A stretch of DNA of 64,000 bases from Mizuhopecten yessoensis (GCF_002113885.1 NW_018408547.1:205165-269164), one strand, 5' to 3'. Positions 7,930 to 58,890 are shown, numbered from the stretch's first letter. The notes: generated by a model not told the origin, from the letters alone. Translations and numbers: made by a program.

Positions 7930-8576
7930 TTATTTTTTCTAATCAGATGATCGGATGAAGACTTCTTATACATTCTCGCAGGGAAAATATGAATTAGCAT
8001 TATTGTAAAAGTGGGACCCAGACCTTTCTCCGTCATGGTATTTAGGCTGGTTAGATAGAAAATAAACTTCTGGTACGTAGCATGACTGAAAAAATAGGAT
8101 AGATTGGTCGGGATTTATATACTTTTCTCCCACAATCATTATAGGTTTCCTCACTCCCGATTCATTGGATAAACATGCTAGGAGTTGGTAAACATTTTTG
8201 GTTACCCACTAGTGAGTAACACCCTCAACCTGATTTCATTGGTCATTTTTTTACTTATGACGTCACGTAACAATGCTTTGCGACGTCATCTTCCATTGTG
8301 ACGTCATGATTCACGGCAATTGTTTCCACCATCGGATGCATACATAGTGTACCTTCAAGGGAAACATGACTTTCCAGATAAAATATGAACATTATTGGAG
8401 AAAAAGGATCCCAAACTCGTGATGGTAGAATATCATGTTTATCTAACTCTCGTTAGTTAATTTTAAAATTGTAAAAGACACTCGGGAAACTTCGTGTCTT
8501 TATACAATTTGAAAATTAACTAACTCGAGTTAGATAAACATGATAACCAACCATCACTCGTTGGGGAACCTCTATA
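7930..8576 (+). mobile_element. Non-autonomous element with long terminal hairpin (8405-8571); class uncertain, possibly Crypton-like
   Basis: About 165-bp palindrome ending in CTCTATATA; body 8125-8325 matches 47640-47845 in reverse complement. Confidence 0.65.
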
Positions 8577-9159
8577 TAACTTATAGAACTTTACATTATA
8601 TATTTTTCTCCTTCTGTTTTGAGGGGCTACTTTATTTGATTTTATGAGCTGCTTTTATTAACGTACTCAAAATGCGTCTGATAAGCAATGTCTAAAATCA
8701 TGATTAGAAAAGTATTTGATTCTATATATGACTATAGTTTAGCGGAAGTCGTTTCACTTTATATTTTTTACTGAATAGTACAAAGGCAAATCAAGACCGT
8801 CTTTCCTCGCTAGAAATGCTACATGTCCACAGAGAATTTTTTATCAATAACACAAAAACAAAAGGAAAGTGTCTTTTATCAAGAAGTTTCTAGCTGTAAG
8901 CTGTAAATTGCATGTTGGTTGGGCACGTGTAGTGTAAAATAAACATAATAGCGAATATGAGTATTGTGATGTTCTTTAATTCAGCGCATTTTACACTAAA
9001 ATGTGTCTTTAAATAACTGTCTCGGATAACAATTTGAATGCCTCGTAAAATCTTAAAAGTCATTTTCCGTCGGGGGGCTCCGCCCCCCTGAGCCCCCCAC
9101 CTGGGCTTACACATATCGATGGGCCTAGCTACGCCCTTGTTTTGTTATACATAACAAAT

Positions 9160-10205
9160 CATTTAAAGATTTAAACATATATTGACCACTGTGACCTTGA
9201 ATATGGGCGAAGGTCATTCATTTGGTAGTCCTTCATCCCAGCATGTTAATGGCCAAATATCATGCACCATTGGGCTTTTGCTTATTAAGAAGAAATCGTT
9301 TAAATGTTTTTAACATATTTGACCTGTGACCTTGAATATATGTCAAGGTCATTTATTTGAACAAACTTTGTAGCCCTTCATCCCAGCATGCTACTAGCCA
9401 AATATCATTACCCTAGGCCTCTTGGTTATTCAAAAGAAGTTATTGTAAAGGTTTTTAACATAATCAACCCTTGTGACCTTGAATAAACAGTAAGTCAAGG
9501 TCATTCATTTGAACAAACTTGATAGTCCTTCATCCGAGCATATTACTGGCAAAATATCATCACCTGATACATCTTGGTTATTCAGAAGAAGTTGTCAAAA
9601 GGTTTTTTATTTGGACAAACTTGGCAGTACTTTATTCCAGCATGCTAATGGCCAAATATATCATCATCAACCTAGGCATTTTGGTTATTCAGAAGAAGTT
9701 GTATCACAGGTTCAAACATATTTGACCCCTATGACCTTGAATATAAGTCAAGTTCATTCATTTGAACAAACTTGGTAGTCCTTCATCCTAGCATGCAACA
9801 GACCGAATATCAGTACCCTGGACCTTTTGGTTATTGAGAAATCGTTTGAAGATTTTACATTTGACCCATGTGACCTTTAAAGTGGATCAATGTCATTCAT
9901 TTGAACAAACTTGGCAGTCCTTCATCCCAGCATGCTACAGGCCCAATATCAGTATCCTTGGCCTCTTGGTTATTGAGGAGAAGTCGTAAGAAGATTTTAA
10001 GACATTTGACCCCTGTGACCTTGAAAGTCGGCAAGGTCATTCATTTGAACAAACTTTGTAGCCCATAATCCCAGCATGCTGCAGGCCCAATATCAGTACC
10101 CTGGGATTTTTGGTTATTGAGAAGAAGTTGTTTAAAGTAAAATATTGACGCCGGACGACGGACGCTGTGCCATGGCATAAGCCCACTTGCCCTTTGCCCT
10201 TTAAA
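9160..10205. mobile_element. HINE/Helentron-type element with ~130-bp internal satellite
   Basis: Repeated TGACCTTGAA...AAGGTCATTCATTTGAACAAACTTGGTAGTCCTTCATCCCAGCATG units; GACG microsatellite; terminal CATGGCATAAGCCCACTTGCCC. Confidence 0.8.
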
Positions 10206-10304
10206 ATCTTGATTAAGAATATTTTTAAGCAATTGTAGCAAAATCTTGATTAAGAATATTTTTAAGCAATTGTAGCAAAACTGGACAGGGTCATTCATCA
10301 GCAA

Positions 10305-10395
10305 CCAGCTAGTTGCTCAATTGGTATAGCATCCTTCATGTCTTGGAGGGTCCCTTGTTTGAACCCTGATCTGGCTGTTGCATTTTTCCTGTTCC
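10305..10395 (+). repeat. tRNA-derived repeat fragment
   Basis: TGCTCAATTGGTATAGC (A box) and GTTTGAACCC (B box); similar remnants near 36045 and 52725. Confidence 0.45.
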
Positions 10396-10647
10396 ATTTT
10401 TTTTCCTGATTCTATTTAATTTTGTTTACCTTTTCACTATTTCCTTTATCACTCAATCTTTAGTAACCAATTTAACCAAAACGACTGAAACTAAGGTTTA
10501 AGTTTATCTCAATCTTTAGTAGCTAATTTGAAATTTACATAAACAACTGATTATTTTTTAATTATTATAATTGTCTATTTTTCAAAGATTTTACATAAAC
10601 AATTTTGAAACAAATATGACATATTCAAACACATACAAAACAAGCAA

Positions 10648-11237
10648 AACAAGAGGCCCAATGGCATTTTTGAACATTCAGGACAATTCATTTAAAGTTT
10701 TAAACATATTTGATCCCTGTGACCTTGAATATGAGCGAAGGTCATCCATTTTAACAAACTTGGTAGCCCAGCATCTAATTGGCAAAATACCATAACCCTA
10801 GGCCTCTTGGTAATTCAGAAGAAGTTGTTTAAAGGTTTTAAACATATTTGACCCGTGACCTTGAAAATGGGTCAAGGTCATTTGTTTGAACAAACTTGGG
10901 AGCCCTTCATCCCAGTATATTATTGGCAAAATATCATTATCCTATGCCTCTTGGGTATTCAGAAGAAGTTGTTTTAATAATTTAAACATATTTGACCCCT
11001 GTGACCTTGAAAATAGATGAGGTCATTTGTTTGATCAACTTGGTAGCCCTTCATGCTTCATCCCAGCATGTTACTGGCCAAATATCTTCATCCAATGCCT
11101 TTTTGGTTATTGAGAAGAAGTTTTTTAAAGAATTTTCACATATTTGAATTTGACCCCTGTGACCTTGAAAATGGGTAAAAATGGACGGACGCCGCACCAC
11201 GGCATAAGCTCACTTGCCCTTCGGGCAAGTGAGCTAA
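10648..11237. mobile_element. Complete HINE/Helentron-type element, same family as 9160-10205 and 55203-55935
   Basis: AACAAGAGGCCCAATGG start; satellite units; GACGGACG; terminal hairpin AGCTCACTTGCCCTTCGGGCAAGTGAGCT. Confidence 0.85.
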
Positions 11238-11244
11238 TAACAGG

Positions 11245-11915
11245 TCCTTTTCAACAGAACAGAATAAGTCACTATCCTCTAGAATCTACACTAGCGTCCG
11301 TTGCAAGTGTTGAAGCAGGTGAAATTCGGCAAAAAGCATCTTTTAAATCGTCTCCTGGTTTCTAATGAAACTCCACATTTCAGGGATGCACTTTCTATCT
11401 CGTTGAAAGTCGAACCGCTTCGTTGCCTGATGAGCGTAGCCGCTGTACAACCGGTTTTTTTAAACGGTCAGCCTTCTCCGCGAACACGGAATAAATTTCT
11501 GACTTTCTGCAACTTAAATATTTTACATGGTATTTTTGTTTTAAGATAATCAATGCTTGTTAAACATGCTGGTAATGTAAATTAAATTATTAAAAAATAT
11601 GCAAAGTGGAACCATTTGTTTATTACTCAACTGTGTATTTTGTCACCGTTGACAACGCATCATCTTTCCCGCGAAAAAGGCTGTTCAATTAATGTTGGTT
11701 TCATGACGGTGTTTTGCATTTTAACGTGAAAAAAGATATTTTTTTCTTAACTTCAAATAATAAAAGTGGATGTAATAGAATGTTAATATAAGGTTTGAAA
11801 TACCTCTTTTTCCGTTCAAACATATTCTCCATCATGCTTCACATCATGCTTCACATCATGTCAATCATGGAATATGTTTGAACGGAACAGTGTTGCATAC
11901 CCTCATAAATGTTAA
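11245..11915 (+). mobile_element. Non-autonomous element with terminal hairpin (about 11785-11915)
   Basis: TTCCGTTCAAACATATTC...GAATATGTTTGAACGGAA inverted arms; left boundary approximate. Confidence 0.5.
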
Positions 11916-11934
11916 AAAGATGAATTTTAAACCT

Positions 11935-12134
11935 TAAATAATTGCACATATCTTCAGAAGATATGTACAATTCAATTGAAGATATGTACCATTATATTAA
12001 AGATAGTTTCAAATATGACGAATTAAACCTATCTTCAATTAAATTGAACCTATCTTCAATTGAATTGTACCTATCTCCAATTGAATTGTACATGTCTTAA
12101 ATTAATTGAATATGTGTCAATTTGGCGTTCCATT
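11935..12134. mobile_element. MITE fragment with ~22-bp subterminal repeats
   Basis: Repeated TCTTCAATT(A/G)AATTG units ending in TTTGGCGTTCCAT. Confidence 0.55.
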
Positions 12135-12619
12135 GGTTTCTATGTTTTTAACTTTTTTTTCCGGGTAGAAATCCTGGCGGACCTACAAATGTTTATGAAG
12201 GCCTTACAAAGTTTTGTCAAAGCTCGCCTGAAAGCACCATCAGATTATTAGGTCCGACTTTATTTCATAAACGAACAACTCTGGTCGAACCGGTTCAATC
12301 ATTTGAATAGCGATAAACAAATGCGACACTAGATGCTTGCCCCACCCCCTTTTAGAAGTTTGTTTTTCGACCAAAACATTAATTGTTATACTTTTATCAA
12401 CCTCAGAGAATATATACCCCAACGCCAGATATAAATTAACACCGACTCTATTATCTTCACCTATATAATGCCTCCAGATATTTCAGAGGGCGTGTACTCT
12501 AGTCGTATGATGAAATAGAGAATAAAAATCACAGAAAAGGGTGATTTTAAAAAAAATGGGAAGAAAAACACTGAACATGAACGCATGCATTAAATAGAAG
12601 AGATTATTACCCAATAGTC

Positions 12620-12920
12620 TATATAAATTAGAATTAGTCATTTTTGACTGTTTCTGTTTTTTTGTCCAATTTCGGCTGTAGGGGTGAAACAGTATACAGT
12701 TGTTTCATGCCTTATCAGAGGGAACTGTTACCCGGCGCGAATTCGATGCGCAGAAATCTCCCCTTGAGAGTCCCGTTCAAGCGTTTATTTGATAAACGCG
12801 GTAGGGGGAACTGTTTGCCCTCGGCCTAGCGGCCTCGGGCAAACAGTTCCACAGGGCTTCCCCCTACCTCGGGATGATAGTTTTGACTGTTCCCCAAATA
12901 GCCATGAAACAATTGTATAG
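12620..12920 (+). mobile_element. Hairpin-ended non-autonomous element
   Basis: ATACAGTTGTTTCATG...GGAACTGTTTGCCCTCGGCCTAGCGGCCTCGGGCAAACAGTTCC...CATGAAACAATTGTAT palindrome. Confidence 0.65.
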
Positions 12921-13385
12921 TGTTCTGCTCCTGCACAAACAGTTACAGAGCTTCTATGTTTATTTTTGCCAAAGGGCTACATACCTTATTTATTTATCAA
13001 TACACATTTTCAAATCATTAAACATGATATGAAATATTTGGGACATCTTGCATCCACGATATTCCAGGGGTTATACTCACTTACGCTAAGAAGGGGCATC
13101 TCATTATGATGTTCGAAATTCATCCAAATATGTTGCGAAAACGGAAAAAGTATAATAAAAGAACTCTGAGATCAGAAATGCCTATTTTTACTAAACTTGC
13201 ACTCTTGAATACACTAGATGGCTTCCGAGAGCCTCCATAGCGTATCTCTGAAGTACTGCATATGTCGTTATTTCATGTAGGCAAAACATTGAGAACCTTG
13301 TCCCCCCTAGCAAATTAAAAGATGCGATAACTGCTGAAGTGTTTTGTGCCATGGCGCCTACTATTTCACACAAGTCCCTTAATTC

Positions 13386-13455
13386 ACATCTTCGCTAGCC
13401 AAGTGTTCGCTTCGTATGGAGTGTAACGAAGACAACACTTGGCTAGCGAAGATGT
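13386..13455. mobile_element. 70-bp hairpin mini-MITE with CATC...GATG ends
   Basis: ACATCTTCGCTAGCCAAGTGTT / AACACTTGGCTAGCGAAGATGT perfect 22-bp inverted repeat. Confidence 0.7.
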
Positions 13456-13596
13456 TAATTTGATGATTGGGTGAACATGCAATTCTCTATTTTAACCAAA
13501 CCGAAAACAACAACACATATGTAGGCATTCATATGTTTCCATAATTATCGACGATATGTTTACATCTTATTAATTAATATCATCTTAATTATTTTT

Positions 13597-13945
13597 AACA
13601 GAACAGAACTTTATTTAACAGTCAGATCGATACGAACGATATATGAGCAACATACATAATAACAGTAGACAGCAATGGAATAGGTCAGCTAGCATGGAGA
13701 CTGAAATGTTTGCATAACACATTTCCGAAAGTAACAAAGGTTTTTCAACAATTTTATATCAGTTGTGCAAAATAGTTCACGGTATGAAATTTGATAGTAC
13801 TTATGTATTTGAAAACTGGAAATAATATCTGGGAATATATTTTCGTCTTCCAGTACGAAAAAGCTACATTCAAATACATAGTGGCATTCATCACCAATAA
13901 CTTGTTGATCACAAAGTGAACATCGAGTTTGTCTCACTTCACCAC
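13597..13945 (-). mobile_element. Non-LTR retrotransposon 3' fragment (CCHC zinc knuckle, RTE-X-like)
   Basis: RCSLCDQQVIGDECHYVFECSFF; frameshifted; tail AATAAAGTTCTGTTCTGTT. Confidence 0.7.
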
Positions 13946-14451
13946 TGTAGGCCTATAGAAAACCCATGCGTGTAAACAAACACGATCGACGTCGTCTGTT
14001 TACTGGGAGCACAGCAAAGACATATAGGCCGTATACACTAATCAGTGTAAAATATTAATGATGCGCCGAGATTTCAGCCGTGATCGTCTGCTACTTCGGT
14101 TGATATACTGACACTGGACATCTAGTCCGGTAGCCTGTGCTACACGACACGGCCATACCGTTAACACGGAGCGGTAGATGACACAGACGACGATAACGCG
14201 TATGTACGTATTTCCCGCCATCCCGAAATGGCGCAATTATTCAAGGTTTATATAGTTTCATCGACGAATCGAGAACACGGCGGTTCTAAAAAATATCATC
14301 ACTTGAACTAAGAATGTGTAAAATAGAGAAGAAAGGACTGTTTTATCTTGGATGTGGACTTCAGCTTACAGGTACAGCATAGGAGGACAAATCTATATAA
14401 ATATATAATATTGATGAGCAGCGGCCTTGGGCGGTTTGGACGATAGGAAGT

Positions 14452-14491
14452 ATGTCTCCTACTACCAAGCCTAAGGAATCACCAGCTCACG
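14452..14491 (+). CDS. Probable first coding exon of the orphan gene ending at 20365
   Basis: MSPTTKPKESPAH then a strong G-gtaagt donor; phase 1 matches the acceptor at 19194. Confidence 0.45.
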
Positions 14492-15009
14492 GTAAGTTTC
14501 ATATACGTCATGACGGCAAAGCATATTGTTTTCTATTGCTATTCGTTATACATTCAAATGATGATATTTTCGAAACCCAATATAAGCATTATGTAAAAAA
14601 TAAATACGTTCAATTTAGTGTCACAAAAGTATTATCTAAGAATTAAATATATGGAGGATATTATGTTTTCCTGTTGAATATAATGTGTGTATATTTGACG
14701 ATTATGTCAGACTACTGATAATCAGTTTTATCCATAGAGTGATAGAATCCATTATTTCACTGGCAAACAGTTTGATAAAAATCGCCAAAACTCTCACTGA
14801 AAAATGTGCCTCTTTTTTTATTATGAAATAGTTAATGGTCCATTTGTGATATAAAACTCTCAACCAAAAAATCATAATAACACATAGGAAAAAATAAACA
14901 TGATTACGTGTATGTGCTTGCATTTGTGAATTCCCGTCATCCGGCACTTATCAGAGTACACCAACACACGTCTCCGGCAAACATACACACATTCACGCTT
15001 ACACATGGA

Positions 15010-15078
15010 GGCACGTCCTTAAATGACCTTAGCTGTTAAAAGGACGTTAAACAATATAAAACCAAACCAAAACCAAAG
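15010..15078 (+). mobile_element. SINE 3' tail
   Basis: GGCACGTCCTTAAATGACCTTAGCTGTTAAAAGGACGTTAAAC plus (AAACC)n, same tail as 48025-48250. Confidence 0.75.
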
Positions 15079-15654
15079 CAAACCTTTCATCTGCCACTAA
15101 TCAGAATAACGGCTGAGTTTTTTAAAGCAAGAATATTTTTACTATTGTCTAGTTAAAATTTATATCTGAAACACCTAGCTTTACCGACAAGAGATATTAG
15201 ATAATTTAGTCGAAAATTTCAGTGTGTCGGTAAAAAGAGGATTAAAAGAGGCTTTGTCGTTCTAGACTATATACTATCATGTCCAACATTATAGAATGTC
15301 ATTAAAGTCAGACGCCGATAATCTCAGGGTTAAAGCAAGAAGACCCAAGTCAGTTAGGGGTTATCAGGTACTACAGGATGGCCTTAACATCAGATGTATG
15401 TTAAGTCCGTGTCAAAAAAGGAAAACCTCAGTCAGCTTGGAATTATGATAGATGTCTTGAAATGTAGGCGTCGGTAAAGTTAGAATGAGAACAAAAAATA
15501 GATAAAAGAAAAGTTAGAAAACGCTAGTCATTTAGAAAGGATACGCTAGTACTGGACGTCGTTTAAGGCAGGTACCGGTAAAGTAAGGGATAAAGAAAAC
15601 TTCACTCAGTTAGAGGTTGAAAGGTATAGCAGGCGTCAGTAAAGTCAGATGCAT

Positions 15655-16350
15655 GCAAGATTTTGGTGCATTCACTTGTTACCTCTCGGTTGGATTATGG
15701 TAACGCCCTGCTCTGAGGTATATCTGACAAACTAACTAGTCGTCCAGAACACTGCAGCACGGCTAGCTACTCGTACTCGAAAGAGAGAGCAAATCACACC
15801 TGCGCTTTATTCGTTACACTGGTTACCTGTACGATACAGGTCGCAGTACAAAATTCTGGTATACACATACAAGGCACTGAACGGCACAGCTCCTCAGTAC
15901 CTACAGGAACTTGTTACCCTGTATCAGCCGTCAAGATCACTGTGGTCGGAGTCAGAATCTTTGTTGTGTGTCCAAAAATCTCGTACTGTATCCTACGGAA
16001 ACAGATGCTTTGGGAGGGTTTCGGCTACGTTGTGGAATAGCTTACCATCTGCTATTAGGAAGTCAAATACCCTGGCCAAGTTCAAGAGGGACATAAAAAC
16101 TCACCTCTTCACGTCTGCATTTTAGAATCTTTGCAAAGACGTCATGTAAATACCACCCTTTTATTTGTTCAATTATGCGCACATTGCTTTTTAAATGTAT
16201 GAAAGTGATTGCAAGCCTTTGTTGTTTGTTTTCACAATTATAACCATTACTATTATCCATATGTTGTAAAGCGCCTTAGAGTAATGTTACAAGTTATATA
16301 GGGCGCTATATAAATGTTGTATATTAATATTATTATTATTATTATTATTA
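15655..16350 (+). mobile_element. L2-clade LINE 3' fragment
   Basis: LVHSLVTSRLDYGNALL*, VQNTAARL, HWLPVRYR, LWNSLP, FKRDIKTHLF; tail GTAAAGCGCC...GGCGCTATATAAAT(ATT)n. Confidence 0.92.
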
Positions 16351-16617
16351 AAGAGACAAATCCCCATTCATTTAGAGGCTTGACAATATCACAGAACGCC
16401 TTTAATAAAAATGCAGGTTAGGAAGGGCTTTAAACATGCAATTTTAGATGTTTATATATCTAATGTATCAGGAATGGATCAATATTTGCTCCTCTATGTA
16501 CACAGCTTGTCTGCTATATCATATTTTACCCAGGCCAGTGATTATTATAGCTGTCTATTTATACTCTGTACTGAGTAGTGACAAATAAATTGGTCCTCGA
16601 GAGACACTGGTCTCTTA

Positions 16618-16799
16618 GTTACCGTGTTAACCGGTCTATCTCCATGACAACGGATACAAGGTGATTAGAAGTGATTAACTTGGTGCTGATCAACCTGTGT
16701 GATTATTAAGTATGTTCATTACAGGTAAAACAAATCCGGACATGTGTTACAGAGAGATTTCTGCATGTAATAAGTACGGTTCGATGTTTCTATGGCGAT
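16618..16799. promoter_or_regulatory. Cluster of three RFX X-box-like motifs
   Basis: GTTACCGTGTTAAC, ATCTCCATGACAAC and GTTTCTATGGCGAT versus consensus GTTNCCATGGNAAC. Confidence 0.35.
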
Positions 16800-17461
16800 G
16801 GAAAACGAACATACGATGTATCCAGCGCAAGATTGACACCTGTATCTAGCTATATGTAGGTTTCATGGAGCGTACAAATGAACATCCAGACTAAATGATA
16901 AAAAATGTTTCAGGACGCTTTCACTTAAGATTTAAAATTAAAAAAAAAACCATTGTATACTGACCCATGGGTCTATAATCACATGGAATAGAAAGTCAGT
17001 ATCAAGGTCATATCTAATTAATGCAAATTAAAATGACTAGTAAAGCACCCAGAATAGCGTGCGTGCACAAAAATACATGATACTGAGACCCGTTTCCTGT
17101 CCCATGGTCGAGCTAACCATACTTGTTGGCTGTCCCAAACCTTGGTCCGTCACTGTGTTCATCAATAAATAACAAACTCGACGCTTTAACGGCGTAATAA
17201 AGGCGCGAGTCCAATTAAATATTCAGTATGCACCAATTTGCCGTGATAGTCTTACTATGTATAAGTAAAGTTTGTCAACAATAAACATAATTAATATGAT
17301 TTGTCGGGATAGTTATTGTGACTTAATGTGATTATTGACGTGTTTATTTGTATGTAGTAAGTGCACTTTTATGGTAGAGGTGAGGCAGATAATTAATTAC
17401 ACAAGCAATGCCGTAAAAGTACAGACATACCGTAAACTCCAGGACGTGATACAATCACGAA

Positions 17462-17880
17462 ATATGGAGGAAATTTAATGGTGTCTTCAGTAATAACAAA
17501 TATATTTTACGAGTGTGGCAAATATCAAAATATTTGCTACACAAGTGAAATATTTTGTTATAACTGAAGACACCATTAGATGTTCTATTTATTACATTTT
17601 AAAAGCATAAGGAATCAGAAGCGAAATAATAAGCGCCATATTTCAATGACGTCAAGCTTGACGACAAGGCTGCGCGCCATTTTGAACGGGATACTCAACG
17701 CAATTCCGACGTTTTCTGCTATTTTCTGGTATGATTGCTTATAAAAATGTTATTAATTGTATATTTATGTAAATACTTAAGTGTGTATACCAAACATTTG
17801 ATATTTGTCACGGTGTGAAATTATATATCAGTTTTATCAAGTTGATAACATCCGATATTTCACTAAGAATGTAATAAAAA
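17462..17880 (-). mobile_element. Hairpin-ended non-autonomous element, hairpin at left end
   Basis: AATGGTGTCTTCAGT...ACTGAAGACACCATT palindrome; body bounded by TTATTACATT...AATGTAATAA. Confidence 0.65.
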
Positions 17881-44462: not shown

Positions 44463-44537
44463 GTAAATGAAACTATTGACAGAAATACATGCAATCAACT
44501 TTGTCTATAGCTCATTAAAAATAGATTTTCTATTTAG

Positions 44538-46662: not shown

Positions 46663-47144
46663 AGTTAGCTTGATATTGCAATGAATTTGAGTGTGTTTGA
46701 TGAAATAGTATTATCTCTAGGACTGTGAAATCAATCTCATACTCAGTAATGACATTTAAAGTTAAATTTTCAATTATTAGAATTATTATCATTATTATTT
46801 AGATAACTTTTCTATTATGTAAATTATGAGTTTTATATTTACCTTACAACCATTAAGAAGCATGTCTTCTTAAGCTCAAAATTTAATCTGAAAATAATAT
46901 TTGAACAATAAAATAATTTATAACAATTGAACTATTATAACCACAGCCTGGTGTCTAACAGTAACATTTTCTACTCTGATTCGGGGAATAATAATTGAAA
47001 GTGCATTTTCTACTCGGGGCATTGTCATTTCTAATACATTCCTTACCCAAACACAGATTTTCCCAACGAGTAATGTTAGGTTAACCTGTTTTTCAAACTC
47101 AAGTTAACTATTTTTTCAAATTGTGTGAAGATAACAGTTAGATT

Positions 47145-47547
47145 TATCACATAATGTATTGTGTTATCCAGTAAATATACCCATGTCATATTTTTTGCGT
47201 ATCAACCCATGTAAATGACTTATCAGCCCTGTGATTGGTTGTAAGTTTCAATTGATTTAATTGAGACGTCACAAGTACATGACGTCACAGACCTACGCAT
47301 TGGAGTCAAAATGGCGGCTTTTTACATTTCAATGTTGCATGAAAATTGTCGTTTTATACGAATAAATGCCACAAATCTTGATTATGTGATAAAAAGGATC
47401 TTACACTCGTTTTCATATCATATGAAATTTATGAAACTTGTCACGAAACTTTCATTTTAGCTCCCCAGAGGCTCGCTAAATTGAAAAATTCTTAGATTCG
47501 TTCATAAATCTCATATGAAATGGAAACTCGTGTAATCTCCTATATAT
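47145..47547 (+). mobile_element. Hairpin-ended non-autonomous element
   Basis: TATCACATAAT...ATTATGTGATA body, then palindrome TTACACTCGTTTTCAT...ATGGAAACTCGTGTAA and CTATATA. Confidence 0.65.
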
Positions 47548-47549
47548 CT

Positions 47550-47990: not shown

Positions 47991-48024
47991 TAATTGAAAT
48001 TCGTCTAACATCCTTTGTCATTGA

Positions 48025-48250
48025 GAGGCTGCGATGGCTAAGTGTTAAAGGCGTCTGACATTCTGCTACCACGAGCCCTCCACCACTGGGTCGTGGGTTC
48101 GAGACCTACGTAGGGCAGTCGCCAGGTACTGGCCGTAGGTCGGTGGTTTATCTCCGGGAACTCCGGCTTCCCTCCACCACCAAAACCTGGCACGTCCTTA
48201 AATAACCAAAGCTGTTGATAGGACGTAAAACACAAACAAACCAAAACAAA
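48025..48250 (+). mobile_element. Full-length V-domain tRNA SINE
   Basis: A box TGGCTAAGTG; B box GGTTCGAGAC; TCTCCGGGAACTCCGGCTTCCCTCCACC core; (AAAC)n tail. Confidence 0.9.
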
Positions 48251-49453
48251 CCTTTGGCATTGAAGACGTTTGCAGAAGAGCGATAAAAGAATATTGGTTT
48301 AGTAAGAAAACACTTTATTTTCTTTTAAAGCAGATATATCATACATGGTATTATAAAATATCAGTTTGTTTTAATTGGAATGGGGGCATATCATTAACAT
48401 CAATTGCGTAGAAAGTAACGACTCATTTGGGTCTTATTATTGCAATAATACTCTCCAATACATTTACCTCTTAACATGTCTATAAACAGAAATAATATTG
48501 CAGTTAAACAGTTATATATATACAAGAAAATATTGCTTTATAAAAGAATATGGTGATACAATAAGTATATATATACCAAAAATATATATCTATGAGAAAG
48601 GATATTAAACCTTTTTAAACGCCAGCGTGGCTGCAATAATGTTGATATTCAAAATGATTCATTACAAATGTTAAATAAAGGGCCTTTCAGTGAACAGGCC
48701 CACTTTATTACCTCACATTATAACACCATAGCCCTATGGTTATGTAAAGCATTGATAGAAACTAACAAACTCTAAATCTAAATCTAAGTATAATGCCAGT
48801 ATAAGATAAGAGATAACTGCTACCATATTGACGTAGATGTAAAAACAAAGAATCATCCACATTTAAAAGTAAAGCTAAACATACGAAACAATACACACAT
48901 TTTTTATTATTATTTAGACATAGATGCACAGTAGCATATTATATCTAATCAGCTTATTTATTTACTTGTTTTTTCATCGCATACGTACATTTACCGCTCC
49001 GTTAGACGACGATCTTTTCACTAATAATCAAAATTATTTAGGACCCCATTTTTGTCAGTTTCAATGCCATGGACTCCCTTGGTAGGATGGTGAGCCTGAC
49101 AGTCACGCTTACAATCATTGATTACAGTACACGGTCAATCGGGGCTTCTTTTGTTTTTGCCTGTATATATTCTTTGAATCACAGAATCATTTTAGTATGA
49201 TGGTTCAGACCGAATCAGTTCCCTCATAAGACAGATGCTCCGATCATTAGGAGCATTCCATTATTTCTTTTATTTTCTTTATCGTTATATTCAAATTCAT
49301 GTATAAAAATATATTTCCTACTAAGTGGTTCAGTTTATCAATTCCTTCAGTGAGGTCAAAGTGACAGGACACATTTCAGGAACCTTTTTCATTATAAAAG
49401 AATATGTTACAAAGGCCGATAAAATACAAGTGCGTGGATATAAAATTAATTTG

Positions 49454-50788
49454 ATTTATAAAGGTATAAATGCGTAGAAGTAACAAGTATCATTGTACAA
49501 AAATACATCATAACATAATACGCTGATAATGAGTCTTACTTGAGTGTTAGTATTGTAATAATGCTCCCAATGAATGATTCACGTAACAGCAATCTTAAGC
49601 AAAACCAGTGCTGCCGTCATATAGTTCCATATTAACACTTGCAAACACATATGTAAAATGATGACAAAAGATACATATACCTATGAAAATATCATTCATC
49701 TTCTTCATAGTCGGCAGCAAGGCTACTAAATCGTGTATAAGACTCTCAGTGAACATGTTGATATACTTATGAGTGATATTATTTGAAGATTGTAATGGAA
49801 AATAAGTAATAAACATCTATTATGCTTTCATATAAATAACAACAAGCATCACGGTTATTTAGTACCCTGAAATTGCATAACCATAGAGCTCAGTATTGAA
49901 AACAGATTTCGTATAAATTGAACATTATTTTGGTGAGCATTCAAAACATTGAGAAACATATTACATTTAAAGACAATGTGTTAGTGACCGCTTAAAGTAA
50001 CAAGTAAGAAAAACACCTTGACCCATTACAGCACAATTTCCTGAGTCTCAATAAGGTAATTCATTACTATAAATATTTTACTGGAGAAGTTGTAAAACGT
50101 CTTATTTGAAACTTATTTATAAAGGTATAAATGCGTAGAAGTAACAATTATCATTGTACAAAAATACACCATAACATAATACGCTGATAATGAGGCTTAC
50201 TTGAGTGTTAGTATTGTAATAATGCTCCCAATGAATAATTCACGTAACAGCAATCATAAGCAAAACCAGTGCTGCCGTCATATAGTTCCATATTAACACT
50301 TGCAAACACATATGTAAAATGATGACAAAACATACATATATCTATGAAAATATCATTCATCTTCTTCATAGTCGGCAGCAAGGCTACAAAATCGTGTATA
50401 AGACTCTCAGTGAACATGTTGATATACTTATGAGTGATATTATTCGAAGATTGTAATGGAAAATAATCTTTTTTTTTTAATATACAAATCACTATCTTGA
50501 GTCGTCCCACAAAAACACTATTTTTTAACAAACATATAGGTGGACCATTTGCTCATGTTGTAATAAACATCTACTATGCTTTCATATAAATAACAACAAG
50601 CATCACGGTTATTTAGTACCCGGAAATTGCATAACCATAGAGCTCAGTATTGAAAACAGATTTCGTATAAATTGAACATTATTTTGGTGAGCATTCAAAA
50701 CATTGAGAAATATATTACATTTAAAGACAATGTGTTAGTGACCGCTTAAAGTAACAAGTAAGTAAAACACCTTGACCCATTACAGCAC
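49454..50788. repeat. Duplication of the receptor stop codon and 3'UTR (49454-50034 and 50115-50788)
   Basis: Near-identical copies, both ending CTTGACCCATTACAGCAC; the right copy has about 95 extra bp. Confidence 0.95.
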
Positions 50789-51118
50789 GGTGCTCAAGGC
50801 CACGATGGCAATCACCACTACGAATATCACGAAGAATATTCGGTCGAGGCACCGGCCAACTTCCTGCCAATCACGCTGGAGCTTGTCATAAGTGCTCTCC
50901 CGCATGATTTTTCCTGCCATAATCTTTGTGTTGTTCGCAACTTCTCGGAAGTGGTCGTCGGGCACAGTGATGTTGACATTATCCAGTCCACTGTCGTGTG
51001 CAGTGTCCTGTTGCTCCTCTATCAAGCGCATGTTCATTGGCGTATCAGGGTCGTGGTATACAGGGCAGTCGGTGTCCAGACAAAGACATCTTCGCACGCC
51101 TCGACTATGTATACACAG
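50780..51118 (-). CDS. nAChR alpha-like subunit, exon 8 (MA helix, M4, stop)
   Basis: LQRDWQEVGRCLDRIFFVIFVVVIAIVALSTVL*; gatag acceptor, phase 0. Confidence 0.92.
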   Translation of the reverse strand: MCIHSRGVRRCLCLDTDCPVYHDPDTPMNMRLIEEQQDTAHDSGLDNVNITVPDDHFREVANNTKIMAGKIMRESTYDKLQRDWQEVGRCLDRIFFVIFVVVIAIVALSTVL

Positions 51119-52111
51119 CTATCAGAAAAGAGGAAAGGACAATACAATCTCCTGATATGATACACTCACGGTAAGTATCATATTCCATGCATACAAGAAG
51201 ATAACGTTTTTGATTTACCATAATGATTTATACATGTATGGATATAAAATGAAAAACTTTTACTTTGATAATAAAGATAATGTCTTAAAACGTATACTGG
51301 TTGAATAGTTACCATTGGGCATTTTATTCGTTTTCCCTTAAAATTGAATTGCTAAAAGATTGTTGAATCTAGCTATGAGAATAAAGCTTAGTGCTTGTAA
51401 TATGAAATATTCTTTAGATTTAAATCCCAATGTGATTCGAATGAAATAATTCATTCAGTTCCTTTTAGTACTACTACTATAAAGGTTATGACAATACCAC
51501 ATCGATAAAGTTCTGATGACTTTTTTACTCAAAATTGATCAGTGCTACGCTTTCAAATCTACGGTATTGGATAACACTTTTTATATATATTTCCATTTGC
51601 TCTGCCATATCTATTATGTGTATACTTTACAGAAAGAAATACATTTCTTTAGACTATGAATGCAATAAATTATTGTCATATTAACGTCCTTCCCCGGCCT
51701 CTCTTAATGTGAGCCCATCGTAGGAACCAAACATTTAGGTGACGCAAGCTGATTCCAGAACAAAACATTTCTAGACACTTTAATCCAGCAAATATTAGGA
51801 AGTAAGTGTATGTTAATCGTTCATGGTTTCAATTCGAATTGTAAACATACGATTTTGTTCAATGTTCATGCTGGTATGAATGCAAATCTGCATAGACATT
51901 AAAATATATATGCATCTAGATATTAAATGAAAGGTGTAATGGACTTGACCCCTCGTGAAGTGTTGTAAGACCCTACTCCTTAATGTGTCTTGTAGGGACG
52001 GTTTCAGAATTTACTTTGCAATCGAATTGGAACTATTTGGTTAAAGTTTGTCTTGTCTTCCCCTGATATTAAAGACGAAACATTTATCGGTAAGTTCAAA
52101 TAGTCACATAC

Positions 52112-52230
52112 AGAACCAAGCCATGCTGGTAACGCCTTCCGTCTTGCTCCCCTATTGCGCAGACATCCAGTTAACACACAGCACAGAATACTGAAGAACT
52201 GCAGCACAAATATGCCAAAGTAGAACACGG
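52112..52230 (-). CDS. nAChR alpha-like subunit, exon 7 (M3, MX)
   Basis: (A)VFYFGIFVLQFFSILCCVLTGCLRNRGARRKALPAWLGS; ttcag acceptor, gtatgt donor. Confidence 0.9.
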
Positions 52231-52914
52231 CTGAAACAGAAACGATTGCACAAAATACTATTAAATAATCCTATTATTGTGTTTACCGTTTTGTCAGCAG
52301 TTAAATTGTTAAAAGTACACACATGTTAATATGAAAAAGATCGGTTTGAGTTCGTTTTTACTTCCTACACACTAGTATATTTCTGATAAATGTGATGATA
52401 CGAAACATCGTAAACATTTATTTTTCTCAGCCACAAACGATGGCGTATTCCATTGATAAATAAAATAGTCTCTGTAAAAATTCTTTTATTTGTTCATTTG
52501 TTTGAGCATTTAAGTTCTCACATCATTTATGGTCATATGTAAACGGATACCCAAGGCAAGACATTCCACACGAAAAGAAAGGGCAAAAAGAAGGAAAAGA
52601 AATGGATGAGGTCGTAAGGATCCCTTTCCCACTGCACTGGTTTTTCCTATATACAGTAACGTTCCCTTAACATCAGATTGGATATAACTGTAGCACAGTT
52701 GGGCTAGAACACTCCCGTTGACCAGGTAGCTCCATCGGTTAGACATATAATGTAACAATCTGAAGTCTAGGGATCGGTACCGGTCTAGCCCCGCTGACTG
52801 AGAACACTGTTGTTGATTATATTCTGTTTATTTCGTATTTACTCTTTCTCATAAAAGTCCCGGAACGTACGGTTTTCTTTTCAGAAATTATTTATCAATG
52901 CCATATTAATGCCG

Positions 52915-53265
52915 GAAACAGTTTCCAATACTTAGTTACAGTTTGTGTTAGTGGTACGGGGATCCTCAAACAGTTTCCAATACTTAGTTACAGTTTCCAA
53001 TACTTAGTTACAGTCTCCAATACTTAGTTATAGTTTGTGTTAATGGTACGGGGATCCTTAAACAGTTTCCAATACTTAGTTACAGTTTGTGTTAGTGGTA
53101 CGGGGATCCTTAAACAGTTTCCAATACTTAGTTACAGTTTCCAATACTTAGTTACAGTCTCCAATACTTAGTTACAGTTTCCAATACTTAGTTTCAGTCT
53201 CCAATACTTAGTTACAGTCTCCAATACTTAGTTACAGTTTGTGTAAGTGGTTCGCGAATCCTTAA
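52915..53265. repeat. Compound minisatellite with 20-bp and 32-bp units
   Basis: ACAGTTTCCAATACTTAGTT interleaved with ACAGTTTGTGTTAGTGGTACGGGGATCCTTAA. Confidence 0.95.
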
Positions 53266-53482
53266 GTATTGCAATGGAGGCATCGTATCTTTTTACAGAT
53301 TAACATCAATCATTTCGAATACATGATGTTCCATTTTGACATGACGAGTTATATTTTGCATATTATTTACCTATTGGCAATCATTTTACATTGCGACATA
53401 AAAGGAAATGATACATGTCGGTATATGAACATCATCGTATGCCGTAAAACGTTTATCAGTTTTGCCTACTTTCAAAACTTAA

Positions 53483-53565
53483 CTCATTCACCCCTGAAGA
53501 CGCATTTGAACACTTCCAATTCAAAGGTTGGAATAGTTCATTAGGAAACTTCAGGGGTTAATGAG
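53483..53565. mobile_element. 83-bp TTAA-flanked MITE (piggyBac-like)
   Basis: ttaa-CTCATTCACCCCTGAAG...CTTCAGGGGTTAATGAG-ttaa. Confidence 0.8.
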
Positions 53566-53719
53566 TTAAGGACAGTTGTGTTAATATTGATACATAGAGT
53601 TATTTCACAAGAGTCTAACTATTCACTCAATCATGTAATTATTAGCCGATTATGTAATGGAAACTGACCAATGAAAACGGAAGTTGTAACATCGACATGA
53701 TATACATATGTATACGTAC

Positions 53720-53806
53720 CTAGAACCGGGACAGTAGCATGATCAAAGGGTACCGCCTCCTGTAGGACCACCATCAACACAGTCATGGTCATTAGTAGAA
53801 TCATAC
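53720..53806 (-). CDS. nAChR alpha-like subunit, exon 6 (M2, M2-M3 loop)
   Basis: (G)MILLMTMTVLMVVLQEAVPFDHATVPVL; 87 nt, phase 1-1. Confidence 0.9.
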
Positions 53807-54689
53807 CTGACATAAAAGCAATACAATGTTAGATGACACACACCCTCATTGGGTGGATCGTACTCACGTAGAGGTCGGTCATTGGTGATACTAACTCGGT
53901 GATACTAATTTTAGAAACAGCAGGTTAATATTCACTCTATGACGTCAATTCAATTGTAATATCACAATGCTCTCTGCCTTATGCAGTACTTTCCTCTGTA
54001 CACCGTTCATATGTGCCATCATTTTAATTGATTAAAACATTATTTAGCATCTTATATAACAATTAAGGACTTTAAGTTCGGTAAATATGTAATTATATGA
54101 ACCTGAAACGTGGTATTAAACTCGACTTGGAAGTAGCAAGTATTTTTGCCGATCCCTTTTGCGCCCTAAGTATCTGCTTTCAAGTTGTCTTCTTACAACT
54201 TCCAATTGCCAAGGAATATTTCGTTTTAATTTAAGTTAAATCTACAAATATCAGGTAGATTGATCAGCATAAGCAGTCATTTCCGGGTTGGCCTCTACCA
54301 TTCTCCCCCAAACTCACTTTACTTATGTCTGAATAGTAGTCTTTGACATCTTTACCAATATTTTACCTGTACTGCCGGATCCCAACTTGACAACATATTC
54401 ACCGTTCATTGATACAACATTCTATCCTCTTAGAACAGGATTTAAAAAACTTAAAATCAGAAAATTTCTTTACATTTTTTCCGAGATAAAATCGTTTATA
54501 GATTTGCCCCCATTTATCTTTCTTATCGGATTTCACAGTCTTGAAATATTACGCATAGTTTCCCTTTTGATCAGAAATAATTATGTGCAATTGCAGCATT
54601 ATGCTTCAATCCAAATGAAAGAGAAAGAAAACAGACTTCTGGAAAGATAAATAATGTTATCTACGGCTTTAATCACGTTCTATACAAAC

Positions 54690-55162
54690 CATAGTTAGTT
54701 CTGCATGTCTGATCAGGTGGAAGCAAAAACACCACAGGGATGAGGATGGCAAGGAAAACAGACGGTCCCACAAGTGCAAGTCTGTAGTACGAGGCTATTC
54801 GTGTAACAGTTATATCGATCTCTAGTTTGACGTATGTTTCCGGACAACACTCGTACTTGGCATGAATTATTTGAGCTGTCATTTTGTTTAAAGTCCATTG
54901 AGGATGGCTTTTTAGAGTGTCGCCAAATCCAGCCACCGGGATTTCCTGTGACTCGTATTTGCCACCGTATGTTAGGTCCTGCTTCAAGCTAGTGAATGTC
55001 CAGGACCCCATAACAAGCTTACACTTCTGTGTGTCGTAGGGAAACTTTGCCAAGTCCAAAGGACAGAAAAACGATATCGTTTGTGCAGGAATATACATTA
55101 CTGATCCCGAAGAGTGGACTATCGCATTTGCGACCCTTGTTCGACTTGGATGGAACGGTGAA
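54690..55162 (-). CDS. nAChR alpha-like subunit, exon 5 (Cys-loop, loops B and C, M1)
   Basis: CPLDLAKFPYDTQKC, GSWTF, YECCPETY; gatag acceptor, gtttgt donor. Confidence 0.95.
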
Positions 55163-55202
55163 CTATCAAAAGATTAAAGTGTTTAGCTGTTTAATAAAAA
55201 AA

Positions 55203-55935
55203 AAAAGAGACCCAATGGGCCTGAATCGCTCACCTGGTACTAATCTCACACTTGTAATCTTAAAAGTGGACAGCTACAGGCAAAATATCTGTGTTCGATT
55301 CATTTGAATCTTTTTAATGATTTAAACATATGACGCCTGTGACCTTGAAAGACGAACAAGGACATTAAGTTGAACAGAATTTTCAGCATTCCGTCCCAGC
55401 ATGCATCTGGCTAAATATCATTACCCCAGACCATTTGGGTATTCAGAACAAGTCATTTAAACATTTAAACATATTTGATCCCTGTGACCTGGAATATGAG
55501 CGAAGGTCATTCATTTGGTAGCCCTTCATCCCAGCATCTAACTGGCAAAATATCATAACCCTAGGCCTTTTGGTAAATCAGAAGAAGTTGTTTAAATGTT
55601 TTAAACATATTTGACCCCAGTGACCTAGAAAATGAGTGAATGTCATTTGTTTGAACAAACATGGTAGCCCTTCAACCCAGCATGTTAGTGGCAAATTATC
55701 ATAATCCTATGCCTCTTGGGTATTGAGAAGAAGTTGTTAAAAGATTTTTAGTATGTTTGACCCCTTTGACCTTGAAAATGGGTGAAGGTCATTTTTTTTA
55801 ATAAACTTGGTAGCCCGTCATCCACGCATGTTACTGGTCAAATATTATCATTCAAGGCCTTTTGGTTGTTGAGAAGAAGTAGTATTAATGGAAAAGTTGA
55901 CGACGGACGGACGACCGACCGACAGGTGAGCTAAA
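55203..55935. mobile_element. HINE/Helentron-type element
   Basis: AAGAGACCCAATGGGCCTGAATCGCTCACCTG, satellite units, (GACG/GACC)n, CAGGTGAGCTAA. Confidence 0.85.
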
Positions 55936-56693
55936 AATCTAAAGAGAGAATGATGACCAATTAAGACAAATGTTACCATAAGTGTCTATTTAAAATATAT
56001 AAGTATTTTAGAAGTATAATTTTGCCCATTGTTTCGGCTACTTACTGTAATTGACACTTTTTAACCTTTGATAGAATAATAAACCACAAAATATATACCT
56101 AATTATGCTATCTCACCGTGACAAGTATCAAATGTCCAAAAGAGTCCCACAAAGTCCAATAGTTCCACAAATTGAAACCGTTCCATACAGAAAATCATTT
56201 TAAATATATTTCACGTTAATTTGACCCTTGTTTATCATATGACACCACGGTTCCCAGGATAACAGGGATGCATACATTTATAACCCTTTTCCATTCTCGT
56301 ACACTAATGCAAAGTTAATTTTTTTATGAAAAATCACAAATTTTGCAATATTAGCCTATAACCTTAACCCGAACAGAAATCACATGTATGATTATCTGTA
56401 AGATAACATACAATCAGCATTAAACGAACAGCAGAATATGTACACTAGGACATTCAGACCAGACTCTTGATAGTGTCGTTTCTACTCATCAAAATCAGCT
56501 TTGACTGGTAGATTTTCAAAGGACAATTTCTTTTACATGTGATTTGACTCTCTAAATTGTGAAATGCCACTGAAATCCTTGTATAATCAATATATTGAAA
56601 TTGACGGGATAATAATGTTAACTGATTATTAGATATAATTAAATCATACTTTTAACATTTTCATATACATAATAGTAAATGGTGACACATTAC

Positions 56694-56803
56694 ACATTGT
56701 AGACCTCCAGTTCAGGTAGCCATATTGAATCAGGAGAAAATCTTATAGTTGTTAGGCCTCCGAAATCTGACGAGTTCCACTGCAACCGTTCATCTTGCCA
56801 AGT
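56694..56803 (-). CDS. nAChR alpha-like subunit, exon 4
   Basis: TWQDERLQWNSSDFGGLTTIRFSPDSIWLPELEVYN; canonical 110-nt exon. Confidence 0.93.
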
Positions 56804-57016
56804 CTGAAATTAATTTGTATTCTAGTTGACAAAGTAAACAATTATATCATAAATACCAGAAAGAGCATGTACTGTAATGTATTATTGATTTATTCATACA
56901 TGAATCAATACGAATTAGTTGAAATAGCAAAACTCTAAACATCAACCAAGCGATTCAACATTTTTTTTTACAATCAATAAACCATGCGATGTTTTTGAAC
57001 TAGATCGCACACTTAC

Positions 57017-57061
57017 CAGTGTAAGCCAATAGGAAAATGTCATGGTATCTGTAGCCGTCTC
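57017..57061 (-). CDS. nAChR alpha-like subunit, exon 3
   Basis: ETATDTMTFSYWLTL; canonical 45-nt exon; tacag acceptor, gtaagt donor. Confidence 0.9.
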
Positions 57062-57669
57062 CTGTAATCAAAGACAGAAGTTGTAGGTGGTAAAATAAAA
57101 CATTAGAGCAAGCATCATATAACATCCAAGATGTAAACGTTGAACATAGTTAACGGGATACTTGAGTTTCCATATCCACCTCGTCGATCATAAAATAGCA
57201 TGGCTGTTTCTAAGCAACCTCCGAAGAGTGTTACCTTTTGATATATATTCATATATTTATTTCCGTTGTACAACCCCTAGGTTACCCTACCGATCAAAAT
57301 GCTGTAATCTACGTGAATGATTTCCACATCAGAAACTGTTCGCGTCTTAACCATTATGACAGAAATGCTAATCGATGCTAATCGACTGACCCGTCTTCAT
57401 ATGACCCTAGCAGTTGGGAAAAGTTTAACCACTAAAAAAATGTATATATATATATATATATATATTGACAGATGCAAGTGGTAACTGACGTACAATTAGT
57501 TAAAACATCGTACCTTTAATAGTTCTGTTGAAAAATGTACCATTAACCGAAAGAAATCATAGAAAATGGTTGAAGTACAACTTCCGTGGCGGCCTTAAAA
57601 TAAATATTCACATGCGTATACCAACATTTTTGATTGTATGCCACACAGTTCCGTTCAGATATATTCTCT

Positions 57670-57816
57670 AAAGATTTAAATGCATATTCTAATATTCATG
57701 ATTGTATGCAACGCATATTCGTGGATGCGTGGCAAAGTCTAATAACAACTGTGCCGCGCATCCACGAATATGCGTTGCATACAATCATGAATATTAAAAT
57801 ATGCATTTAAATCTTT
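57670..57816. repeat. Near-perfect inverted repeat with ~65-bp arms
   Basis: AAAGATTTAAATGCATATT...GGATGCGTGGCA / TGCCGCGCATCC...AATATGCATTTAAATCTTT. Confidence 0.93.
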
Positions 57817-58359
57817 CATTTAAAAGACAGCATAACCAGACCCGTGCACATTTGAACATGCATTATCAGCAAACAGAATAATCTAATCTAATGATCTCGA
57901 ACTAGAATTTATATTACTGAACCGCTCTTATTGAAACTTAATATAGTATAATATGAATATAAATGTTCTTAAATCATAAAATGTCGACATGTTTACCATT
58001 AGAAGACAGTAAATATCTGCGTATACACATGAAACTGATTGTTATTTGCTCTTAGTTTTAATTTATATTACCTGTTGCTGAGTACGACACCAGCGAATAA
58101 ATATCCACTATTTATTTAAGTAACAGAAATTGCTTACGAGATGCTCAGAGAACGTGTACCTCTCACCTGTTTCTTATTTATCTAAAGTAGCAAATGTTAA
58201 ATTTGTCATATTCAGGTGCATTTCATATGGAAAATAAATGTCAACTGAATGCAGTCAATAATTAAATCAAATATTAAACATATAATTTTAAGCGAAGTAT
58301 TTAATTGATTTGTCAAAATTCATTGTTAATATCAAATAAGGCATGTATTCTGAATACTG

Positions 58360-58890
58360 GTTTAATGAATAGAACGAATAGAACATCTATCTACATGTGT
58401 CGGTCAGTGTCGTTGTTACACCTCAAGTGAATTTCTAGCTATTTGATTGGTTGGGAGAAAATTAAACAAAAATCTCTGTCACCCCCCGAAAATACATTGG
58501 TTTTAAGGGGCGCGGGTGATATTGCCATGAGACAGTGAAAAATATCACATGCGCGAAAAATGAGCGTTCACCGCTTCGTTTCCCCACCGTGATGGTCACA
58601 AGAACGTTTCACGGCAACAGCCAATTTTATCAAGCGCCGGTGCGATAGCGATTGTAAACAGCAGACTATCAACAAACACGATTTCATTATCGAGGTTTGC
58701 TGCCGTTTCTGAGCTACAAAGCCTTTGGTGTAACAAAATAGATATGACATTCATTAGCAGGTGACAGTGAATATTGTCAACCCTCAAAAACCCATTGTCA
58801 CCCGAGGCGAAGCCGAGGGTGACAATGGTTTTCTCGGGTTGACAATATTCACTGTCACCTGCTAATGAATGTCATATTTATATATTATTA
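58360..58890 (+). mobile_element. Hairpin-ended non-autonomous element, hairpin 58742-58877
   Basis: 136-bp near-perfect palindrome centred on CCGAGGCGAAGCCGAGG; left boundary approximate. Confidence 0.75.

Follow-up and report, generated by a model that had tools for sequence, protein, structure and literature searches.

A 64,000-nt stretch of the Mizuhopecten yessoensis genome (GCF_002113885.1, NW_018408547.1:205165-269164), hereafter the window, contains five long hairpins whose arms fail to pair in the same way again and again, with CTCG facing CTCG. What kind of element ends in such a hairpin, and what are the mismatches for? The initial annotation placed the hairpins in unrelated elements and proposed a structure that folds well on one DNA strand only. 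The five hairpins lie where it placed them, and their sequences differ as it said. They are the 3' modules of high-copy, non-autonomous, non-coding elements of approximately 410-470 bp, referred to here as A to E. The mismatches, referred to as boxes, are a real, non-random and strand-polar structural feature of one hairpin-ended transposon group, and are not described in the literature searched. The source genome comprises 988 Mb in 82,659 contigs (approximately 36% G+C), from which 91 loci were read. Consensus sequences and boundaries rest on 29 aligned copies of A, 16 of B and 29 of E, plus one second copy of D (L091).

Genome searches with each hairpin gave 2,235 candidates for A, 455 for B, 810 for C, 2,383 for D and 460 for E; these are first-look counts. 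Element boundaries are sharp in the copy alignments. Each element has a terminal inverted repeat at its 5' end, a promoter-like body of approximately 250 bp, an inverted partner of the first repeat, a hairpin of 125-176 nt as its last module, and finally an A/T tail of 3-9 nt. Directly upstream of the hairpin, the opening 9-13 nt of each element are repeated as their reverse complement: TTTCTCCCA / TGGGAGAAA in A, TTATTACCCAA / TTTGGTAATAA in B and TTGTTACACC / GGTGTAACAA in E, with exact repeats in C (an 11-mer) and D (a 13-mer). The 5' repeat starts at the alignment boundary, or no more than 1 nt from it, in A, B, D and E; a gap of 0-3 nt separates the 3' repeat from the hairpin foot in all five elements. 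Measured from the start of the 3' repeat, the element end is approximately 137-182 bp away in the window's four intact copies; more generally, this repeat lies 150-190 bp from the end of these elements. All five elements start with TT, and the start TTRTTAC is common to B, C and E. A and D have a common hairpin foot, AAAAGGAYC, and a common tail, ...CTAT(AT). The statement that these elements have neither terminal inverted repeats nor target site duplications must be withdrawn: each has the asymmetric inverted repeat of 9-13 nt, and flank duplications of 20-50 bp are often seen in B, D and E.

BLAST between the family consensuses found no similarity. The description of the elements as unrelated therefore stands as far as detectable sequence similarity goes, but not in its wider sense, as they have one architecture and similar termini. 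The inverted-repeat layout accompanies all five CTCG hairpins and none of the seven other long hairpins in the window; boxes and asymmetric repeat go together because those seven hairpins lack such a repeat. Judged by architecture, the families are one group of hairpin-ended transposons and not unrelated kinds.

Every 2x2 internal loop in the consensus hairpins is either CTCG/CTCG or a CpG-decayed form of it. There are three such loops in A, two in B, three in D, one in C, and in E one plus one decayed. The frequency of the boxes in the consensus alignments of A, B and E is approximately 0.9; where a copy departs, the change is usually CpG decay to CTTG or CTCA. Perfect complementarity is not found even in the consensus hairpins, and the mismatches are a family state, not the decay of single copies. 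CTCG is found on both arms at the places first quoted for A, B and D; in C, a minus-strand element, it appears as CGAG/CAAG on the plus strand, and E is mixed. The hairpin top strands carry approximately 23 CTCG-type boxes and one CGAG, which overlaps CTCGAG; a true palindrome would carry equal numbers of the two. The boxes are also spaced: successive boxes in A are separated by 33 and 32 bp, those in D by 31 and 24 bp, those in B by 34 bp and those in E by approximately 20 bp. Only the two inner bases of a box are fixed. The outer bases track the palindrome, and the closing pairs are always C-G and G-C. In A and D the first box lies at an equal offset from the common AAAAGGA foot, and the stems between the boxes are wholly different and fully paired. 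This is the pattern that would be expected if pairing and boxes were both constrained. Among all five families, too, the stems have nothing in common yet keep their pairing, and the boxes recur at matching positions.

The boxes also occur beyond the window. A hairpin census of the window plus 288 kb of loci (approximately 350 kb altogether) gave 20 clusters, and such loops occur only in the A, B and E clusters. The tip found in B and E, CCTCGGC-N1-8-GCCTCGG, is present at 958 mismatched sites genome-wide, versus 7 for a reversed-pattern control; the mismatch type is non-random and strand-polar, as first proposed. At least five loop types (TTC, AAA, AGA, TTAC and CTGCG) recur among the listed sites, and therefore more families than the window's five carry the motif. 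Single G:T versus A:C mismatches, used as a further strand test, showed no asymmetry.

The TC bases of the boxes lie on the strand which has the hairpin at its 3' end in A, B, C (on the minus strand), D and the majority of E. Some tips are flipped. The E tip in the window (58803-58817) is the exact reverse complement of the family-majority tip, and flipped tips are found at five loci, the window copy plus L032, L033, L035 and L048 (5 of the 29 E copies, a sample biased towards the window's flipped copy). Two of the latter four have extra point changes in the tip, and the hybrids L036 and L057 have perfectly paired tips. The flipped copies lie at different loci and belong to one subfamily, which includes unflipped members; a flipped master therefore stayed mobile. 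In B, approximately 3 of 16 copies are flipped, to varying extents, and one is a hybrid. Such partial flips in a minority of copies are compatible with the two arms of an imperfect palindrome exchanging sequence from time to time. A regular flip/flop cycle, as in the rolling hairpin of parvoviruses, which would give both forms in similar amounts, was rejected: flips are in the minority, vary in extent and include half-converted hybrids. The flips also bear on the mini-hairpin GCGAAGC, which the initial annotation noted at 58807-58813. The position is right, but the window copy, whose tip accounts for the mixed picture in the initial annotation, is the flipped minority form and does not represent the family. 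GCGAAGC is on the plus strand only in that minority; most E copies carry it on the CGAG strand. Likewise, the family with TTAC loops has the GCGTAAGC mini-hairpin on the CGAG-box strand.

The boxes resemble DNA motifs of known stability. Since the closing pairs are always C-G and G-C, each box on the complementary strand is C-GA-G facing C-GA-G. The CGAG block has been described by NMR: within thermally stable DNA hairpins it forms two sheared G:A pairs with cross-strand stacking, in keeping with a pyrimidine-GA-purine rule (PMC10085684). The equation of CGAG/CGAG with the sheared tandem G:A motif is thus documented. The melting temperatures of the mini-hairpins GCGAAGC and GCGTAAGC are 76.5 and 71.5 C (PMC13037366). 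The same C-GA-G facing itself, and the same GCGAAGC and GCGTAAGC loops, are found here on the same strand; the published molecules are oligonucleotides whose sequences come from phage origins and a human promoter (PMC10085684, PMC13037366), and such motifs are not known as spaced marks within long stems at transposon ends. From this chemistry it can be inferred that the unusually stable motifs all fall on one strand and the T/C loops on the other. Folding with RNA parameters favours the GA strand in four of the five families, by only 2 kcal/mol in E. Taken with the polar mismatches of the consensus sequences, the CGAG block makes a folded-strand signal a reasonable inference.

Sites that are used as a folded strand are found in bacteria. 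In integron attC sites and in the ends of IS200/IS605 the structure is kept while the sequence is not, and unpaired or mismatched bases in the stem mark the strand. They differ from the present hairpins in being bacterial, in having stems of tens of nucleotides, and in being marked by extrahelical bases instead of tandem G:A; the analogy is one of mechanism only. The favoured reading is that the hairpins are the 3' end modules of one hairpin-ended transposon group and the boxes a folded-strand recognition code; it is held tentatively, at a little under an even chance. The boxes would act as a structural code, to be read once the DNA has folded, whether as a displaced single strand or as an extruded cruciform. 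Where the hairpin stands at the 5' end of a strand, each box on that strand would form a C-GA-G block of two sheared G:A pairs, and in two tip types the loop on that strand would also form a GCGAAGC or GCGTAAGC mini-hairpin. The GA strand would thus fold into an almost continuous helix with marks approximately three turns apart, and its complement would have destabilising T/C loops. An enzyme could use the boxes to recognise which strand it holds and in which orientation. If the two inverted repeats paired, the 5' end would come to lie at the hairpin foot, where the joint (TATA|TTRTTAC in B and E) could be cut and rejoined with a target resembling it. A more far-reaching version is doubtful: that this is an animal transposon which integrates via a folded single strand, in the manner of integron cassettes or IS200/IS605, with a spaced tandem G:A code in a very long hairpin choosing the strand and perhaps a Crypton tyrosine recombinase as the enzyme.

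Several observations weigh against a folded-strand code. With the DNA parameters of ViennaRNA the two strands are nearly equal in energy; that parameter set is assumed not to credit tandem G:A. Perfectly paired versions of the tip occur at 6 and 46 sites genome-wide (52 in total), which amounts to approximately 5% of tips. The polarity of the innermost box is not essential, given the spread of the flipped E subfamily to at least five loci. Copies of a family share one master, which leaves only four or five independent lineages. Among the loci read, no autonomous partner came to light. Finally, a comparison of the first 100 listed tip sites, out of 958, with 14 recombinase loci and 7 Rep loci, all on contigs up to C1080, found no pair closer than a few kb; its power is low.

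The target itself resembles the ends of the element. Of 26 E copies, 25 have T at position 2 of the 3' flank, and this flank, N-T-R-T-Y, recalls the element start TTGTT. On the other side, 10 nt before the 5' end, is an A-Y-A-T-T motif. Loose contig ends from four individuals repeat both of these flank features and confirm both ends of E. The insertion is present in all four individuals (four studies), and no empty allele was seen among them. In B, the 3' flank CTGTTAC compares with the element start TTATTAC, and the 5' flank mostly ends in A. Several B copies lie within short tandem arrays whose units carry a CTGTTAC-like motif. At L075 the neighbouring uninterrupted unit serves as an empty site: insertion took place between ...GATA and CTGTTAC, with nothing lost or gained. 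This resemblance of the target to the joined element ends fits any site-specific enzyme that cuts and rejoins.

Of 15 B copies, 8 show flank similarity of 20-50 bp (control 0.5%); among 24 E copies there are 5-7 (approximately 1.2 expected), and among 14 A copies none. In D a single copy was checked, L091, and it has a flank duplication of 33-38 bp. A fixed-length target duplication was rejected as the duplications are variable. Direct repeats of 20-50 bp, or short minisatellites in which every unit starts with the CTGTTAC-like target motif, flank the B copies L074, L075, L077, L087, L088, L065 and L069, and flanking direct repeats or minisatellites are likewise found at L033, L037, L038 and L058 (E) and at L091:560-1060 (D). 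Such repeats may be produced by insertion, or insertion may favour them. At L090, B is nested in B, and relative to the B consensus a 22-bp duplication is bounded by two CTGTT motifs. B(1-126) is joined to a full B copy at two unrelated loci (L086 and L090), a junction contig in one run has E copies head to tail, and contig C706 (227550-228734) carries three E-type tips at intervals of 497 and 671 bp. The B chimera and the C706 tips point to nesting, or to tandem insertion at the element's own end motif. Variable duplications bounded by motifs are unusual for simple recombinase integration but have a precedent in Helitron2 of Chlamydomonas (PMC3627910).

Which enzyme moves these elements? The chance that it is a Crypton-type tyrosine recombinase is put at even, while an HUH Rep is possible but unlikely. 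To our knowledge, the way in which Crypton ends are recognised has not been known since 2003. The elements are Crypton-like in having no conventional pair of terminal inverted repeats, no fixed-length duplication and abundant non-autonomous derivatives. The sequence after the 3' end also resembles the first 5-7 nt of the element, like the short terminal direct repeats, of 4-6 bp, which are taken as recombination substrates (PMC3212892). The published survey found animal Cryptons to lack terminal repeats of any kind and is silent on hairpins (Kojima and Jurka 2011, PMC3212892). The asymmetric inverted repeat sets the present elements apart from Cryptons, as do the long flank duplications, which are unexpected from simple site-specific integration. 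The literature search found no paper on such hairpins in Cryptons or on mismatch boxes in Helitron ends.

The genome contains no fewer than 102 Phage_integrase matches, among them a set of 506-aa frames. A profile search of the census material (approximately 350 kb) found no recombinase besides that at L041:385-873 (minus strand), a 162-aa open frame which is the N-terminal half of a tyrosine recombinase and lies 340 bp from an E copy. This gene was rejected as the partner of the hairpin elements: its relatives adjoin reverse transcriptases or lie within Ngaro-type repeats, and it is a DIRS/Ngaro-type remnant. Its best 150 relatives, and the six contigs that were read, are DIRS/Ngaro-type retroelements or unclassifiable. 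Two 5-kb recombinase-bearing copies from another animal (L096:3701-8725 and L097, GCA_964340395.1) are 99.7% identical; they have split direct repeats (A1...B1-A2...B2), a Ngaro-type arrangement.

The strongest rival keeps the elements and the folded-strand code and differs in the enzyme: the elements would be moved by an HUH Rep/helicase, in a Helitron2-like manner with an unusually long 3' hairpin. This we regard as possible, though on balance unlikely. HUH enzymes do act on single strands and read hairpins (PMC10288648), and 56 Helitron_like_N matches are present in the genome, some of them within long open frames; no Rep gene was linked to the present ends. Three features of the Helitron2 definition are found here and two are not. 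Those present are an asymmetric inverted repeat 0-2 bp from the 5' end, a 5' end starting with T, and a partner repeat directly upstream of the 3' hairpin (PMC3627910). In Helitron2, however, the 3' repeat lies 20-30 bp from the end and the hairpin is approximately 20 nt, against 150-190 bp and 125-176 nt here. The defining 5' hairpin is absent, as the first 55 nt of each family fold at -1.8 to -4.0 kcal/mol versus -1.3 to -2.5 +/- 1.4 kcal/mol for shuffled sequence. Regularly spaced CTCG/CTCG boxes are not described for Helitron2. The flank duplications of B, D and E, variable and bounded by motifs, recall those of 7-19 bp which are variable in Chlamydomonas Helitron2 (PMC3627910); the chimera of B(1-126) with full B at two loci also favours this enzyme. 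Helentron-derived HINE/DINE-1 elements (Thomas et al. 2014, PMC4067079) are similar in being short and non-coding, with subterminal inverted repeats and a 3' palindrome, and in being abundant in invertebrates including bivalves. Their repeats are 12-15 bp long and they insert in TT; they differ in having palindromes of 5-10 bp, a 3' repeat located 38-60 bp from the end, and a central region of tandem repeats (PMC4067079). Tested as Helentrons or HINEs, the present elements fit in repeat length (9-13 nt) but not in distances or palindrome size, and their flanks are A/T-rich without a clear TT.

It is improbable that the boxes are read in duplex DNA, with CTCG in direct orientation breaking the symmetry of the palindrome for a DNA-binding protein and no folding involved. 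The boxes are direct repeats approximately three helical turns apart, on one face, and an asymmetric element inside inverted arms is commonly required by recombinase sites. However, four bases are too few for specific recognition in duplex, and only the inner two are fixed, the flanking ones following the palindrome and not a motif. The fixed C-G and G-C closing pairs match the pyrimidine-GA-purine rule (PMC10085684), and the mini-hairpin loops of two tip types lie on the same strand (PMC13037366).

The element bodies raise another possibility. They contain CCAAT, TGACGTCA and ATGGCGGC-type motifs directed towards the hairpin, which suggests, from sequence, that the non-autonomous copies retain their parent's promoter. 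In the bodies of D, C and E (47230-47325, 17625-17695 and 58440-58660) CCAAT, TGACGTCA and a AAAATGGCGGC-type motif all point towards the hairpin, like a retained promoter with a start codon. Such motifs also count in favour of retroposons, in which a LINE/Penelope-type reverse transcriptase recognised an RNA 3' hairpin and the boxes were internal loops of that RNA. Part of the E stretch is present in two RNA runs, and the variable flank duplications, with extra bases at the junctions, would suit this mode of insertion. Nevertheless, the 5' ends are precise and hardly ever truncated, and there is no poly-A or microsatellite tail. Target-primed reverse transcription has no use for a terminal inverted repeat, and the target resembles the element's own end. 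The sense RNA would carry unfavourable U/C loops, and is the less stable strand in four of the five families with RNA parameters. Retroposition is therefore given very little weight. A short interspersed element (SINE) or other target-primed retroposon was rejected on the absence of tRNA or Rfam matches (scans of the window found neither), on the exact 5' ends and on the lack of an A-rich or repeat tail.

Hardly credible at all is that the boxes are functionless, either a relic of one ancestral hairpin or a by-product of mutation and repair in palindromes: family copies inherit their master's state, and flips and half-repaired tips are signs of unstable palindromes, but the stems have diverged beyond recognition between families while boxes, closing pairs and polarity persist, a tandem change of G to T plus A to C has no decay path, and boxes are absent from the seven other long hairpins of the window and from 17 other hairpin clusters.

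The coordinates of the five elements are collected in Table 1. The 5' boundary of C is set by its exact 11-nt inverted repeat. The tip box of A at 8491 is TTCG in the window copy and CTCG in the consensus. The consensus hairpin of B, from which the window copy has diverged, is 176 nt long with two CTCG/CTCG boxes.

Table 1. Positions of the hairpin-ended elements and their parts, counted from the first nucleotide of the window
Feature	Position	Strand	Remarks
Element A	8124-8578	+	family of approximately 455 bp; boundaries from 29 aligned copies
A, 5' inverted repeat	8124-8132		
A, partner repeat	8396-8404		
A, hairpin	8405-8571		
A, end of tail	8575-8578		
A, CTCG boxes	8416, 8449, 8481 facing 8491, 8524, 8557		pairs 8416/8557, 8449/8524, 8481/8491
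Element B	12604-12919	+	diverged, internally rearranged copy of a 434-bp family; consensus from 16 copies
B, hairpin span of the initial annotation	12693-12918		
B, tip stem-loop	12807-12850		
B, boxes of the window copy	12820/12834; 12868		box at 12868 without its partner
Element C	17462-17878	-	family matches start at the hairpin and extend rightwards
C, 5' inverted repeat	17868-17878		
C, partner repeat	17588-17598		
C, hairpin	17466-17590		
C, boxes	17510/17542		CGAG/CAAG on the plus strand, CTCG/CTTG on the element strand
Element D	47143-47549	+	boundaries from second copy L091
D, 5' inverted repeat	47143-47155		
D, partner repeat	47381-47393		
D, hairpin	47395-47545		
D, boxes	47406, 47472, 47527 (CTCG); 47437 (CTTG)		47406 faces 47527
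Element E	58413-58884	+	472-473 bp family, copies approximately 95% alike; 29 aligned copies
E, 5' inverted repeat	58413-58422		
E, partner repeat	58727-58736		
E, hairpin	58738-58881		
E, end of tail	58884		
E, inner box of the window copy	58803/58814		CGAG/CGAG
E, outer box of the window copy	58783/58833		CTCA/CTCG

Some neighbouring sequences are related to these elements. The A copy is embedded in a 1.8-kb repeat (window 7280-9106), which is found with the A insertion at no fewer than five other loci (L002, L003, L005, L006 and L008); this composite was duplicated after A had inserted. Just 5' of D, a 73-bp piece (47059-47131) matches the right arm of an A-type hairpin, inverted. A near-perfect palindrome is located at 57670-57816, with 69-bp arms that are 96% complementary and a 9-nt loop. 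As it lacks both CTCG boxes and an asymmetric inverted repeat, it is a different kind of hairpin element.

The marking and recognition of ends is poorly known in both Cryptons and Helitron2-type elements. A conserved, polar mismatch code in a long terminal hairpin, an inverted-repeat clamp and a target resembling the joined ends combine into a testable model of how a eukaryotic transposon may choose ends and strand. If the boxes are read as proposed, nature would here be employing two very stable DNA motifs, the CGAG block and the mini-hairpin, as recognition marks. The layout is also a search key, with which thousands of unclassified bivalve repeats could be annotated and their autonomous partners found.

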